DNA of 63,750 nucleotides, the filler included, from Perkinsus chesapeaki ATCC PRA-425 (lineage: Eukaryota > Protista > Perkinsozoa), in NCBI GenBank assembly GCA_013115145.1. It is 8 parts of 8 records of this genome, joined end to end, with 100 filler letters (N's around TTAATTAATTAA, not from the genome) between each part and the next. Parts side by side here need not be neighbours in the genome. Positions count along the whole stretch, not along the records: positions 1 to 20,672 come from JAAPAO010000614.1; 7 more parts are not named here. One strand, 5' to 3'. The notes below the pieces were generated by a model. The model made no database searches. It was not told where the DNA came from and worked only from the letters and a program-made list of their open reading frames with translations. The translations under genes and the position numbers were made by a program. Below are positions 1,714 through 4,360 of this stretch, piece after piece. Position 1 is the stretch's first letter, and each line of letters starts with the position of its first letter.

Positions 1714-1840
1714 AGATGGTAACTTAGTAAAAGGGTGTATTATCACTAGACTTCGCATATCTGTTTTCATTGGGTTTATCTCCCAACAACAACACCTACA
1801 AAAACCCCTTCTGCTTTCAACTACCATTTCGACGTTTAAG

Positions 1841-1923
1841 AGTATCAGTGAGAGGAACACTATGTGTACGTTTTCACCACTATCAATCAGATTGGCTGGG
1901 ACGTACTGTTTATCATCATTCAC
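1841..1923 (-). ncRNA. Box C/D snoRNA, family A copy 1 (double guide: LSU P-loop region and sarcin-ricin-loop-like target)
   Basis: C box ATGATGA (1919-1913), D' CTGA (1890-1887), D CTGA (1848-1845). D' guide CGTCCCAGCCAA; D guide AGTGTTCCTCTC. Confidence 0.85.
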
Positions 1924-1934
1924 TCAACGGTCTA

Positions 1935-2023
1935 AATTGTCTCAGAGAGAGGAACACTTGGTTTCTGCTTTTATCCCCACTGACATTCGGACTGGGGCGG
2001 CAGAATAATCATCATCGACAATT
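1935..2023 (-). ncRNA. Box C/D snoRNA, family B copy 1 (snR67/U31-like P-loop guide plus second guide)
   Basis: C box ATGATGA (2015-2009), D CTGA (1945-1942), 7-bp terminal stem AATTGTC/GACAATT. D' guide TGCCGCCCCAGT + CCGA is antisense to conserved LSU GCUGGGGCGGCA. Confidence 0.9.
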
Positions 2024-2032
2024 AATATACAG

Positions 2033-2243
2033 AGCTGTTGCCGGTATGGTTTTTCTTTCAGATAATCACCACATAGTAGCTACTGAACGACTAGGAATAT
2101 ACCGGCACAGCATTGGGAGCGCCAAGGCACTCAACCAACGCATTCTGTATTGGAGGAAACCGTTGGCGACTATACACCACATGAAGATGCTCGCATAGAC
2201 GGTTACACAGGAGTAGTTAGAGGCTACTCCTGTACTCTTCCGA
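2033..2243 (-). ncRNA. U17: U17/snR30 (SNORA73-type) H/ACA snoRNA, distal copy
   Basis: Diagnostic m1 ATATTCCTA and m2 AAACCAT motifs flank the 3' hairpin (stem TGCCGGTAT/ATACCGGCA). H box ACAGAA; terminal ACA+3 nt. Confidence 0.9.
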
Positions 2244-2252
2244 GAGACAGTA

Positions 2253-2338
2253 ATTGCTCAGTGAGAGGAACACTATTTCTACGATATCGCCACTGACATT
2301 CAGATTGGCTGGGACGTAGTTTATATCATCATCGCAGT
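2253..2338 (-). ncRNA. Box C/D snoRNA, family A copy 2
   Basis: C box 2332-2326, D' 2303-2300, D 2261-2258, short terminal stem TGC/GCA. Same two guide cores as copy 1, with diverged spacers. Confidence 0.85.
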
Positions 2339-2350
2339 GATCAATATTGT

Positions 2351-2436
2351 GCTGTATCAGAGAGAGGAACACTTAGTTTCTGCTTTTATCCCCACTGACA
2401 ATCGGACTGGGGCGGCAGAATAATCATCATTACAGC
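2351..2436 (-). ncRNA. Box C/D snoRNA, family B copy 2
   Basis: C box 2430-2424, D 2360-2357, 6-bp terminal stem GCTGTA/TACAGC (sequence differs from copy 1 but still pairs). Guide cores identical to B copy 1. Confidence 0.9.
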
Positions 2437-2445
2437 TCTCTAAAG

Positions 2446-2655
2446 AGTTGTTGCCGGTATGGTTTGTCTCACAGCTAATTGCCACATAGTGACTACTACA
2501 AGTCTAGGAATATACCGGCACAGCCAAAGGAGCGCCAAGCACTCAACTAAGGCATTTTGTATTGAACGGAATCGTTGGCGACTATACACCACTAGAAGAT
2601 GCTCGCATAGACGATTACACACAAGTAGTTAGAGGCTACTCGTGTACCCGTTCAA
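2446..2655 (-). ncRNA. U17: U17/snR30 H/ACA snoRNA, proximal diverged copy
   Basis: m1 ATATTCCTA (2513-2505), m2 AAACCAT (2465-2459), H box ACAAAA, ACA at 2451-2449, 5'-domain closing stem TTGAACGG/CCGTTCAA. Confidence 0.9.
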
Positions 2656-2923
2656 ATCATTACAACCTTTGCGTGCGTCTAAATCACCGGTACCCCACGT
2701 GAAGAGGCACAAGCGCGAACACGCATCAATGACTATACGCACAACCACAGGTCGACAACACCATTAAAGAGGGGCAGTCGAGGGAGAGTGTGCAATGTTA
2801 GCCACTACCAACGCAACATCAACCGTAATATCCTCCATCAAGGCGCATAAAGCAACCCCTCGGCAACCACACGAAACCGTTTCGGCAAGTGAGAGCAACA
2901 TAAGGGAGTCATCGAAGAACACC

Positions 2924-4188
2924 TTAATCGAAGAGATCGAAGTCCATCTCCTCCTCTTCTTCCTCCTCCTCGGCAGGGGCGGCGGCCTCAGCCTTGGCCT
3001 CACTGGCAGCAGGAGCGGCACCGGCAGCAGGGGCGGCGGAAGCGAACTTAGAGGGATCCTTGAGGAATTCCTGAGAAAACAAAAAATAACAAAAAATTGA
3101 GAAGACAAAAGCGTTCTAAATACGAGAACGATAGTTGTTGCCGGTATGGTTTTTCTTTCAGATAATCACCACATAGTAGCTACTGAACGACTAGGAATAT
3201 ACCGGCACAGCATTGGGAGCGCTAAGGCACTCAACCAACGCATTCTGTATTGGAGGAAACCGTTGGCGACTATACACCACATGAAGATGCTCGCATAGAC
3301 GGTTACTGCGAGCATGGTTAGAGGCCACACCGCAATCCCTCCTAGACTATAAACCACCGAAGAAAAGAGCTCCCGTATTACCTTAAGCTCCTCGATCTCG
3401 GGGAAAGTGAAGTCGATATCGGCGCACAAGGCAGCGATGTTCTTGAAGGCATCGTTGATGGCATAAGGCAAGGTGGCCTCGTTGGGGATACCGATCTCAC
3501 GAGAGAAGGCAGCCAAGTTGCGGACACCGTTCATGAACTTGGAAACGAGATCATCATCGCTGATGTCCAAGGCAGCGGCGTCGTAGACCTCACCGTTGTC
3601 GTAGATGCTCTGGAGCTCAACACCGTACTCGAAGGGACGGATGTCCAACTTCATGAGAAGGGCCTGCTGGGAGGCAGTGACCTTGTGGCCCTTGGTGACA
3701 AGAGCGACATCCTGGGAGATTTCGATAGAACCCTTGACAATCTTGGTGGCAATGTTCAAAGCCTGGAAGAAGTTGGTCTGGGAGGGATCCAAAGAAGTGG
3801 GACCAGCGGGGATGTCGACATTGCACTGGGCGACCATACCGGCCTTGGCCATAGCGGGGACCTTGTGCTCACCGATGATCTCACGGATCTCATCAATGGG
3901 GGCCATGCAGAAGATGAAACCAATGTTGCCCTTGGTGACGTTCAACAAGTGACCGAGATCAGCATCGTTCTCCTCCTCGTACTGTCTAAGGGCAGTGCGA
4001 AGCATAGTGTTCTTGCCCATAACAATAACGGCCTTGCCACGGAGAGCAATACGGATGTTCTGGAGCTGCTTGGATCCAACGTGGTCAACGGTGGCGATGA
4101 GGATCTTATCGCACTTGGCGACGAGGTCCTTCACTCTGTCGAGGTAGGCGTTCTTCTTAGCAAGCTTCTTGGGATCGCGAGGTGCCAT
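2924..4188 (-). CDS. RPLP0: 60S acidic ribosomal protein P0 (uL10); exons 4188-3382 and 3070-2924
   Basis: uL10 motifs (GSKQLQNIR, MGKNTM, GPTSLDP..T.FFQAL.I.TKI.KG.IEI). Phase-0 GT-AG intron 3381-3071; exon 2 encodes the Ala-rich hinge and acidic tail EEEEEEEEMDFDLFD. Confidence 0.97.
3133..3343 (-). ncRNA. U17: Intronic U17/snR30 H/ACA snoRNA in the RPLP0 intron
   Basis: Same m1/m2, H and ACA boxes. About 170 nt are identical to the 2033-2243 copy apart from one loop base. Occupies most of the 311-nt intron. Confidence 0.92.
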
Positions 4189-4360
4189 GACGTGTGGAGA
4201 CTGTGAGCTAACGGCTCGTCAATCAATTTAACCACTGAGGGCTGTGAAGAAGTACAACTCACAGCACTATATACCAAATCGATCACGTGATCGATCATAT
4301 TCCTCAGCGGAGCGAAGCAACTGCGCACTTTGCCAATTGTTTTAGTTTCACCCAACCATC
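4189..4360. promoter_or_regulatory. Short divergent intergenic region (likely bidirectional promoter) with an 18-bp palindrome
   Basis: 172 bp between head-to-head ATGs (4188 and 4361). TATATA at 4268-4273; perfect palindrome ATCGATCACGTGATCGAT at 4278-4295. Confidence 0.5.

Follow-up and report, generated by a model that had tools for sequence, protein, structure and literature searches.

In Euglena and in plants, snoRNA genes occur in tandemly repeated, polycistronic clusters of mixed type. The snoRNA clusters of trypanosomatids are also transcribed polycistronically (PMC6562600). In Plasmodium, snoRNA genes lie downstream of ribosomal protein genes or in their 3' UTRs (PFS8, PFS9 and PFS13 after L7a; PFS10, PFS11 and PFS12 at L5), and one snoRNA alternates between the last intron and a downstream position among species (PMC2656528). 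The RNAs of the U17/snR30 family, whose m1 and m2 motifs have been tabulated (PMC7601244, Table 1), are essential wherever they have been tested and are found in introns of ribosomal protein genes in Xenopus and Fugu (PMC7601244). The C/D snoRNA snR67 guides formation of yeast Gm2619, which is equivalent to Gm2251 of Escherichia coli (PMC11121408). In Tetrahymena, the C/D snoRNA TtnuCD32 is complementary to rRNA at the stem of the sarcin-ricin loop, and the site predicted from this complementarity is not methylated (PMC6315972).

Here we describe a snoRNA locus in Perkinsus chesapeaki (ATCC PRA-425; assembly GCA_013115145.1), a parasite of oysters and clams, in a genus that includes economically important parasites of shellfish. 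A full-text literature search for snoRNAs in Perkinsus found no paper describing them. The DNA analyzed is a stretch of 63,750 nt, filler included, which we call the window. An earlier note on this DNA had proposed six snoRNA genes about 270 nt past the RPLP0 stop codon and on the same strand, separated by 8–14 nt and arranged as a duplicated three-gene unit. We find seven snoRNA genes at RPLP0, three of the U17/snR30 type and two C/D pairs, with one U17 gene in the RPLP0 intron and the other six in the array. It is likely that these are true snoRNA genes and that their RNAs derive from a shared precursor.

Results

Organization of the locus

Every element of RPLP0 and of the array lies on the minus strand. 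The features are listed below in order of transcription, with positions counted along the window; all SNORA73 scores given are below the Rfam gathering threshold of 74 bits and both SNORD31 scores are below that of 40 bits, and the SNORD31 E-values come from a 1.75-kb scan.

3382..4188, minus strand: RPLP0 exon 1, 269 codons, an open reading frame
3071..3381, minus strand: RPLP0 intron, 311 nt, GT..AG, host of U17c
3133..3343, minus strand: U17c, intronic U17/snR30 H/ACA gene (SNORA73, 37.0 bits, E 4.5e-7); m1 3200-3192, m2 3152-3146, ACA 3138-3136
2924..3070, minus strand: RPLP0 exon 2, acidic C-terminal tail EEEEMDFDLFD followed by stop codon TAA 2926-2924
2655..2923, minus strand: conserved spacer from the RPLP0 stop to the array, from a three-species alignment
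2446..2654, minus strand: U17b, array-type U17/snR30 gene of the proximal unit (SNORA73, 58.8 bits, E 3.7e-13 locally); m1 2513-2505, m2 2465-2459, ACA 2451-2449
2351..2436, minus strand: proximal C/D-B, SNORD31/snR67-like (SNORD31, 26.2 bits, E 0.004); box C 2430-2424, box D' (CCGA) 2405-2402, box D 2360-2357
2255..2336, minus strand: proximal C/D-A, paralog of C/D-B, from alignment and guide duplexes; box C 2332-2326, box D' 2303-2300, box D 2261-2258
2033..2242, minus strand: U17a, distal array U17 gene (SNORA73, 37.3 bits, E 3.7e-7)
1935..2023, minus strand: distal C/D-B (SNORD31, 23.6 bits, E 0.022); box C 2015-2009, box D' 1990-1987, box D 1945-1942
1840..1925, minus strand: distal C/D-A, from alignment and guide duplexes; box C 1919-1913, box D' 1890-1887, box D 1848-1845

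The host gene is identified by exon 1, which, as the sole query, is 100% identical to the P. chesapeaki 60S acidic ribosomal protein P0 of 317 aa; the match assigns the genome to P. chesapeaki and not to P. marinus. Both splice sites were read from the sequence: exon 1 ends at EIEELK/gtaata and exon 2 begins after ttctcag/GAATTC. The two exons provide 269 and 48 codons, giving 317 aa, the length of the reference P0. Within the intron, U17c lies 38 nt from the 5' splice site and 62 nt from the 3' splice site.

The array begins 269 nt past the stop codon, in good agreement with the earlier estimate, and the distance is similar in P. marinus and P. olseni. Read in order of transcription, its unit consists of U17, C/D-B and C/D-A, spans about 414 nt and is present twice. 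The duplication proposed before is thus real, in the form of two diverged tandem units; a repeat search gave a period of 412–415 nt, in place of the ~405 nt first noted, with copy identities of 81–96%. The coordinates of the six genes proved right, and successive genes are separated by 9, 14, 12, 9 and 9 nt. These gaps leave no space for individual promoters, as had been argued, and, with all genes on one strand, give the array the layout of a polycistronic cluster. The open reading frames over the array had been called spurious, and we reject a protein-coding reading on the ground that every overlapping open reading frame is without a Pfam match. The intronic third U17 gene, the paralogy of C/D-A and C/D-B and their rRNA targets were absent from the earlier note.

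The Rfam check that had been proposed was run at two stringencies. A scan of the whole window at gathering thresholds produced no match, and only a permissive scan showed SNORA73 and SNORD31, all with scores under those thresholds.

U17/snR30 genes

All three U17 copies in the window align to the SNORA73 model end to end, with sub-threshold scores and E-values of 3.7e-13 to 4.5e-7. In a genome-wide search the E-value of U17b is 2.1e-12, this locus is the sole SNORA73 match, and no further U17 genes were found in the genome. The motifs m1 (AUAUUCCUA) and m2 (AAACCAU) are exact in each of the three copies and invariant in ten aligned copies from three species. The distance from m2 to ACA is 7 nt, equal to the Rfam consensus, and ACA sits 3 nt from the 3' end in all three. 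Between the 5' and 3' hairpins, the hinge contains an H box (ANANNA) that reads ACAGAA or ACAAAA. A consensus fold of the ten copies has this H/ACA architecture; 97.4% of its cells are paired, and double (compensatory) changes affect 13 pairs; none of 500 shuffles was as good, and slid controls gave 0–2.

The 18S rRNA of P. chesapeaki carries the matching elements, as seen in a fragment (L017) with rm1 GGAAUA at 364 and rm2 UGGUUU at 398. The two are 34 nt apart, the same distance as in yeast, where rm1 starts at G802 and rm2 at U836 (PMC2664660). Together, the SNORA73 E-values, the exact m1 and m2, the placement of ACA and the matching rm1 and rm2 elements in 18S rRNA from the same organism uphold the original U17 assignments. 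By analogy with the family, the RNAs would dock, through m1 and m2, on these elements within expansion segment 6 of 18S pre-rRNA, and would be needed for 18S processing.

The intronic and array genes represent two lineages, intron-type and array-type, which are older than the species. U17c is 87–97% identical to the orthologous intron copies in P. marinus and P. olseni; the P. olseni intronic U17 has AUA where ACA is expected. U17a is chimeric, with an array-type 5' apex and an intron-type remainder. In alignment columns 1–38 it is 81% identical to U17b and 58% identical to U17c; in columns 39–211 it is identical to U17c at 171 of 173 positions, and 84% identical to U17b. P. chesapeaki thus shows an intron-to-array conversion tract.

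C/D genes and their guides

The C/D-B genes have the architecture of C/D snoRNAs, with boxes C (AUGAUGA), D' (CCGA), C' (GUGGGGA) and D (CUGA) and terminal stems of 6–7 bp that are paired in both copies. In the proximal copy the stem is a 6-bp helix, GCUGUA/UACAGC; in the distal copy it has been remade as a different helix, AAUUGUC/GACAAUU, with the same guides. C/D-A likewise has canonical C, D', C' and D boxes; its terminal stems are short, 3–4 bp in P. chesapeaki. Proximal C/D-A is 94–95% identical to its P. marinus and P. olseni copies. Distal C/D-A is only 84–85% identical to other C/D-A copies, with boxes and both guides intact, and has derived letters in common with a decayed copy at the end of the P. 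olseni array. The SNORD31 consensus has the CCGCCCCAGUC guide in common with the C/D genes. C/D-B is best called a functional counterpart of SNORD31/snR67 and not a proven family member, and C/D-A is an old paralog of C/D-B.

The P. chesapeaki assembly is nearly without rDNA. Pattern searches found three rRNA fragments, C2253 (SSU), C2713 (LSU, including the P-loop) and C3219 (LSU 3' end); several other matches turned out not to be rDNA. The guides form duplexes of 12 bp (GCUGGGGCGGCA), 12 bp (UUGGCUGGGGCG) and 12–13 bp (GAGAGGAACACU(U)) with the organism's own LSU fragments L021 and L001, within a search that covered about 1.76 kb of rRNA, and better targets elsewhere in the rRNA may exist. 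Shuffled guides match the duplex scores in 1–11 of 1000 trials.

The D' guide of C/D-B forms a 12-bp duplex, including one G-U pair, with GCUGGGGCGGCA of fragment L021, exceeding the minimum of at least 10 bp set for a guide. Opposite the fifth nucleotide upstream of D' stands the second G of the P-loop GGGG. From this pairing, the guide would select the universal P-loop Gm (E. coli Gm2251, yeast Gm2619), and the shifted D' guide of C/D-A would select the G four nucleotides upstream of the C/D-B target.

The D guides of C/D-A and C/D-B are invariant and pair over 12–13 bp with the sarcin-ricin loop, the sequence of which was taken from a truncated rDNA fragment. The nucleotide that the shared guide would select for 2'-O-methylation is the second A in the GAGA tetraloop (A2662 in E. 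coli); alternatively, the guide would hold this segment during folding. We tentatively suggest, as a possibility that is less likely than not, that in Perkinsus ribosomes this A of the sarcin-ricin GAGA is 2'-O-methylated under snoRNA guidance, the guide being redundant in two paralogs with 4–6 gene copies per genome. There is a sizeable chance, if less than an even one, that the D guides do not methylate, and that they act as a chaperone for folding of helix 95 and the sarcin-ricin loop in 60S assembly or are functionless complementarity. The literature searched yielded no account of a ribose-methylated nucleotide within the GAGA tetraloop, and TtnuCD32, for which a chaperone role has been proposed, is complementary at 15 of 16 nt to the stem of the loop without methylation (PMC6315972). 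The geometry of the Perkinsus duplex is nevertheless canonical, with 12–13 Watson–Crick pairs that begin at the second nucleotide before box D. Moreover, it reaches past the universal core into the lineage-specific letters CACUU, and every intact copy of both paralogs, in each of the three species, has the same guide, with mutations confined to the decayed copy. All three observations argue for a methylating guide.

When metagenomes were scanned for the two guides characteristic of C/D-B, two matches appeared, both in GC-rich bacterial coding sequence without C/D boxes, which we attribute to chance.

Conservation among Perkinsus species

The synteny comparison that had been suggested for P. 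olseni was run there and in P. marinus, and in both the same gene order lies behind RPLP0, with two units in P. marinus and about four in P. olseni, packed equally tightly. Same-strand snoRNAs within a few hundred nucleotides of the RPLP0 stop codon are thus kept among the three species. The background is well diverged: 4-fold codon sites are only 70–74% identical, the intron flanks and the DNA past the array are unalignable across species, and conservation ends with the array. Because the gene order persists against this background, the array is not a product of chance. Within the C/D genes, boxes and guides are invariant across species at 48 of 48 positions in C/D-B and 45 of 48 in C/D-A, compared with 56–65% of other internal positions. 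Selection on boxes, guides and stems, which had been claimed from the two units, is corroborated by this invariance, by the remade C/D-B stem and by the compensatory changes in U17.

Origin of the probable precursor

Splicing and trimming by exonucleases would release the intronic U17c. For the six genes of the array, a single polycistronic Pol II precursor would be cleaved and the products trimmed to the ends protected in the snoRNP. That the array genes share a polycistronic precursor seems very likely to us. That this precursor arises by read-through of RPLP0 beyond the stop codon, as the earlier note supposed, is plausible, at slightly under an even chance. Perkinsus mRNAs are trans-spliced, which makes long Pol II units plausible. 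Two small public RNA runs with the same species label gave zero coverage of the locus.

The spacer that separates the array from the RPLP0 stop codon contains invariant blocks of ~20–54 nt in three species in which neutral sites are ~70% identical, it forms three predicted hairpins, and its sequence is unique in the genome; an Rfam scan of the spacer at E<=10 gave no match. Conservation of this kind is compatible with a 3' UTR and equally with a promoter, a further RNA or a signal for processing.

It is possible, though we doubt it, that the array is a transcription unit of its own, with a Pol II promoter in the spacer (2923-2655) and the RPLP0 mRNA ending upstream. In favor are the contrast between the invariant blocks and the neutral sites, the end of conservation at the end of the array, and the known regulatory region before the RPLP0 ATG, which is likewise conserved block-wise. 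However, the blocks form predicted hairpins, a better fit to RNA than to a DNA element, and no motif common to the spacer and the RPLP0 upstream region is apparent by eye, in a genus without a known promoter motif for comparison. In addition, the Plasmodium precedent favors co-transcription with the ribosomal protein gene (PMC2656528).

The spacer perhaps encodes a further structured RNA or a processing element, a reading that is weaker than that of sarcin-ricin methylation. In P. marinus, its 3' ~145 nt fold as hairpin, ACAUAA, hairpin, ACA; at the corresponding boxes P. chesapeaki and P. olseni read GUAUAG/AAA and AAACAG/AAA, respectively. Taken as an H/ACA RNA, its sole pocket match by eye is one of 4+5 bp, next to the P-loop. 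As an antisense RNA the spacer was rejected, its best complementarity to the available rRNA scoring 10, less than a typical shuffled value.

It is improbable that the array lies in an intron of the RPLP0 3' UTR, with TAAG/GUGU at the stop codon serving as 5' splice site and all seven snoRNAs derived from introns. Such an intron is suggested by the eight letters TAAGGTGT at the stop, which do not vary among the three species and look like the 5' splice site of the RPLP0 intron, AAG/GTAATA, and by pyrimidine-rich AG sites 40–80 nt past each array; moreover, multi-snoRNA introns occur in plants and Plasmodium (PMC2656528). But AG sites this good are expected by chance, the DNA past the array is unalignable and offers no conserved downstream exon or acceptor, and the same stop-codon letters are alternatively paired in a predicted hairpin.

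Evolution of the array

With 2, 2 and ~4 units in the three species, the array would evolve by unequal crossing-over and gene conversion. Units are homogenised within P. marinus and within P. olseni. Arrays carry decayed edge copies; in the copy at the end of the P. olseni array, boxes and guides are mutated. Although dead copies do build up in tandem arrays, that edge being an example, it is scarcely credible that the region as a whole consists of snoRNA pseudogenes or of a tandem repeat without function, given boxes and guides that are invariant across species against a diverged background, compensatory changes in U17 pairs, and the fact that the locus holds the only U17 genes found in the genome, from a family essential where tested (PMC7601244).

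Discussion

The Perkinsus array is an ordinary kind of gene cluster, previously undescribed in this lineage. The locus supplies the lineage with its U17/snR30 genes, which are apparently confined here, and with a guide for the universal P-loop Gm. A ribosomal protein host with the same snoRNA in an intron and behind the stop codon had previously been seen only across different Plasmodium species. In Perkinsus, a sister alveolate lineage, both positions coexist, with gene conversion between them, and thus provide a clean case for the movement of snoRNAs between intronic and downstream sites. The sarcin-ricin loop is contacted by the elongation-factor GTPases and attacked by toxins of the ricin and sarcin types; if the D guide directs methylation, a loop that ranks among the most conserved and functionally critical in rRNA would gain a modification. 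In practical terms, the annotation clears spurious open reading frames and yields probes for small-RNA work in Perkinsus.

The U17 genes resemble the U17/snR30/SNORA73 family (RF00045) in several respects. [quoted passage not shown] The intronic copy in a ribosomal protein gene has counterparts in Xenopus RPS8 and Fugu RPS7 (PMC7601244). They differ from the family in that Perkinsus has intron-type and array-type lineages with differing 5'-hairpin apices, and in that most copies lie in a tandem array with C/D genes and not in introns.

C/D-B is similarly close to SNORD31/snR67 (RF00089), with the guide core CCGCCCCAGU abutting D' on its upstream side, the same predicted target G and a length of ~85 nt. 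Three features set the Perkinsus genes apart. First, D' of C/D-B is CCGA and not CUGA. Second, the other guide is aimed at the sarcin-ricin loop and not at Um2724, the second target of snR67. Third, there is a paralog, C/D-A, whose target is a G four nucleotides upstream in the same helix. For the D guide the nearest comparison is TtnuCD32 (PMC6315972), likewise a C/D snoRNA from an alveolate, which pairs through its 3' part with helix 95 in LSU domain VI. [quoted passage not shown]

In layout, the locus shares features with two systems. Like the clusters of trypanosomatids (PMC6562600), it mixes C/D and H/ACA genes in a repeated unit with gaps too short for promoters, but its H/ACA RNAs are of the two-hairpin type with ACA, in contrast to the single-hairpin AGA type of trypanosomatids, and the Perkinsus cluster is tied to a protein-coding host gene. 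With Plasmodium (PMC2656528) it has in common not only alveolate ancestry but also snoRNAs a few hundred nucleotides past a ribosomal protein stop codon on the same strand, and a family found both in the last intron and past the last exon. Plasmodium snoRNA genes are mostly single-copy, whereas the Perkinsus unit is tandem, mixes H/ACA and C/D genes, is present in 2 to ~4 copies and shows concerted evolution. Co-transcription in Plasmodium was established by RT-PCR and ESTs, whereas in Perkinsus it is a prediction from sequence.

Layout of the RPLP0 locus

The snoRNA array behind the ribosomal protein P0 gene, RPLP0, is real, and its genes were correctly identified. RPLP0 and all snoRNA features lie on one strand.

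Features of the RPLP0 locus (window positions)
4188-3382, minus: RPLP0 exon 1
3381-3071, minus: RPLP0 intron, 311 nt, GT..AG
3343-3133, minus: U17c, third U17 copy, inside the intron
3070-2927, minus: RPLP0 exon 2, with stop codon TAA at 2926-2924
2654-2446, minus: U17b
2436-2351, minus: proximal C/D-B
2336-2255, minus: proximal C/D-A
2242-2033, minus: U17a
2023-1935, minus: distal C/D-B
1925-1840, minus: distal C/D-A

Exon 1, searched by itself with the exons unjoined, gave RPLP0 its protein identity (100% to the 317-aa P. chesapeaki 60S acidic ribosomal protein P0). The array begins 269 nt behind the stop codon, which bears out an earlier note that placed six same-strand snoRNA genes about 270 nt past it. 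The claimed duplication into two three-gene units also stands, with a period of 412-415 nt rather than about 405 nt and 81-96% identity between copies in a repeat search; the packing is indeed tight, the spacers measuring 9, 14, 12, 9, and 9 nt in gene order rather than 8-14 nt. Absent from the earlier gene list was U17c, which leaves 38 nt of intron on the 5' splice-site side and 62 nt on the 3' side.

Beyond the array on its downstream side is a same-strand 256-aa ORF (525-1295, minus); its sequence contains an internal two-fold repeat and does not match Pfam. Gene content on this side differs among species: P. marinus and P. olseni have a succinate dehydrogenase flavoprotein gene nearby, and P. 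chesapeaki has other content.

Identity of the U17/snR30 genes

By their sequence, the array and intronic H/ACA genes are U17/snR30. In the Rfam check proposed earlier, no family reaches the gathering score in the window; below that score, a permissive scan aligns SNORA73 end to end with all three copies (58.8, 37.3, and 37.0 bits; E-values 3.7e-13 to 4.5e-7). Across the whole 41.7-Mb genome, the RPLP0 locus is the sole SNORA73 match (E 2.1e-12), and BLAST found no further U17 copy elsewhere. Each copy carries m1 (AUAUUCCUA) and m2 (AAACCAU) exactly, the motifs tabulated for the U17 family (PMC7601244); m2 stands 7 nt from ACA, after which 3 nt complete the gene. In the 18S fragment of the same organism (contig C2253, SSU positions 454-1063), rm1 (GGAAUA) and rm2 (UGGUUU) lie 34 nt apart, an arrangement like that of yeast, where they start at G802 and U836 (PMC2664660). 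These matches uphold the original U17 identification, and by family membership the RNAs would act in 18S processing.

The suggestion that stems had diverged yet still pair is borne out by the U17 consensus fold of ten copies, in which 97.4% of cells are paired and 13 pairs changed on both sides; 0/500 shuffles match this, and slid controls give 0-2.

Conservation and evolution in Perkinsus

The proposed synteny check is answered by the orthologous loci to which the P0 proteins led in P. marinus (L023) and P. olseni (L024, L025): both species have an intronic U17 and, past the stop codon, the identical (U17, C/D-B, C/D-A) order. In P. marinus there are two units and, at the array edge (L023:7335-7385), a truncated third U17 of which about 35 nt of the 5' end remain. 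P. olseni has about four units, the fourth with an intact U17 and decayed C/D copies (C box AUGAUAA, D box gone, both guides mutated), an internal example of what neutral decay looks like. Past that U17, the array edge at L024:7990-8130 consists of a C/D-B cut short and a C/D-A whose boxes and guides are mutated. The P. olseni intronic U17 has AUA where ACA is expected.

When intact copies are compared, box and guide positions (13 nt per guide) never vary in C/D-B (48/48; other internal positions, 17/26) and are invariant at 45/48 in C/D-A (15/27), as the claim of conserved boxes and guides would have it. Between species, RPLP0 shows 70-74% identity at its four-fold degenerate sites, and neither the intron flanks nor the 300 nt beyond the array could be aligned across species.

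Two U17 lineages, an intron type and an array type, differ in the 5'-hairpin apex, and on sequence comparison both predate the three species. U17a is a chimera in which alignment columns 1-38 are of the array type and the other 173 are identical to intronic U17c at 171/173 and to U17b at only 84%. This is a gene-conversion tract between intron and array in P. chesapeaki. Array units are about 99% identical within P. marinus and likewise within P. olseni, which indicates concerted evolution. Derived letters common to the distal C/D-A of P. chesapeaki and the decayed P. olseni end copy show that the duplication is older than those species.

C/D genes and predicted rRNA targets

C/D-A and C/D-B align over their full length and are paralogs. 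They share the C box AUGAUGA and D box CUGA; their D' boxes are CUGA and CCGA and their C' boxes GUGGYGA and GUGGGGA, respectively. Guide-target searches in the genome are incomplete because the assembly almost lacks nuclear rDNA, present only as short 18S/28S fragments in tiny contigs plus the LSU 3' end.

Available rRNA fragments
C2253: 616 nt, 18S
C2713: 511 nt, LSU including the P-loop (pattern search)
C3219:4365-4994: 630 nt, LSU 3' end with sarcin-ricin loop, joined to non-rDNA sequence (pattern search)

Predicted guide pairings
C/D-B D' guide: 12 bp with GCUGGGGCGGCA, fifth position opposite the second G of GGGG
C/D-A D' guide: 12 bp with UUGGCUGGGGCG, fifth position opposite the G four nucleotides upstream of the C/D-B site
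D guide of both: 12-13 Watson-Crick bp with GAGAGGAACACU(U), fifth position opposite the second A of the GAGA tetraloop (E. coli A2662)

Shuffled guides equal these scores in 1-11/1000 trials against 1.76 kb of available rRNA. The sarcin-ricin duplex continues into CACUU, letters we take to be lineage-specific relative to yeast and human, which speaks for a real target. The guide core of C/D-B also occurs in the SNORD31 consensus (SNORD31 matches, E 0.004 and 0.022), and its predicted site is the universal Gm (E. coli Gm2251; yeast Gm2619, guide snR67; PMC11121408). Judging from their families, the C/D RNAs would direct methylation. At the sarcin-ricin loop, the D guide may do so or may act in chaperoning only: literature searches turned up no case of methylation in the GAGA tetraloop, and Tetrahymena TtnuCD32 pairs with the base of the sarcin-ricin stem without methylating it (PMC6315972).

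Flanking elements and biogenesis

The spacer between stop codon and array (2655-2923, minus) is conserved far above neutral DNA in the three species; its invariant blocks measure about 20-54 nt, and three hairpins are predicted, the first taking in the stop codon. It is unique in the genome and has neither an Rfam match nor a significant antisense match to available rRNA. Its role could be that of promoter, processing signal, or additional RNA; in P. marinus the 3' ~145 nt resemble a two-hairpin H/ACA RNA (H box ACAUAA plus ACA box), for which P. chesapeaki and P. olseni have degenerate boxes. The conserved elements ahead of the RPLP0 ATG, at 4189-4300 (minus; e.g. 4295-4278 and 4241-4227), are probably its promoter and 5' UTR, and a trans-splice acceptor may be among them. 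A palindrome, ATCGATCACGTGATCGAT (CACGTG core), is kept there in three species, and the roughly 55 nt immediately before the start codon are nearly invariant.

The array genes would be cut out of a single precursor because, as had been argued, spacers of 9-14 nt have no space for individual promoters. Polycistronic snoRNA precursors have a precedent in plants. Trypanosomatids provide another (PMC6562600). U17c would instead follow splicing and then an exonuclease route, as known for vertebrate U17 (PMC7601244). That the array precursor is RPLP0 read-through is plausible, if a little short of probable: the array lies on the RPLP0 strand in all three species and RPLP0 already hosts an intronic U17, but the 269-nt spacer, with its invariant blocks and predicted hairpins, stands against it.

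At the level of sequence, gene identity, structure, guide-target complementarity, and purifying selection are established here. Our literature search found no earlier description of snoRNAs in the Perkinsus lineage, and a few features of the cluster deserve further study. In kind it is ordinary, a group of snoRNA genes linked to a ribosomal protein gene. Plasmodium offers the precedent that also favors read-through, with snoRNAs in the 3' UTR or downstream of ribosomal protein genes and one that switches between the last intron and a downstream position (PMC2656528).
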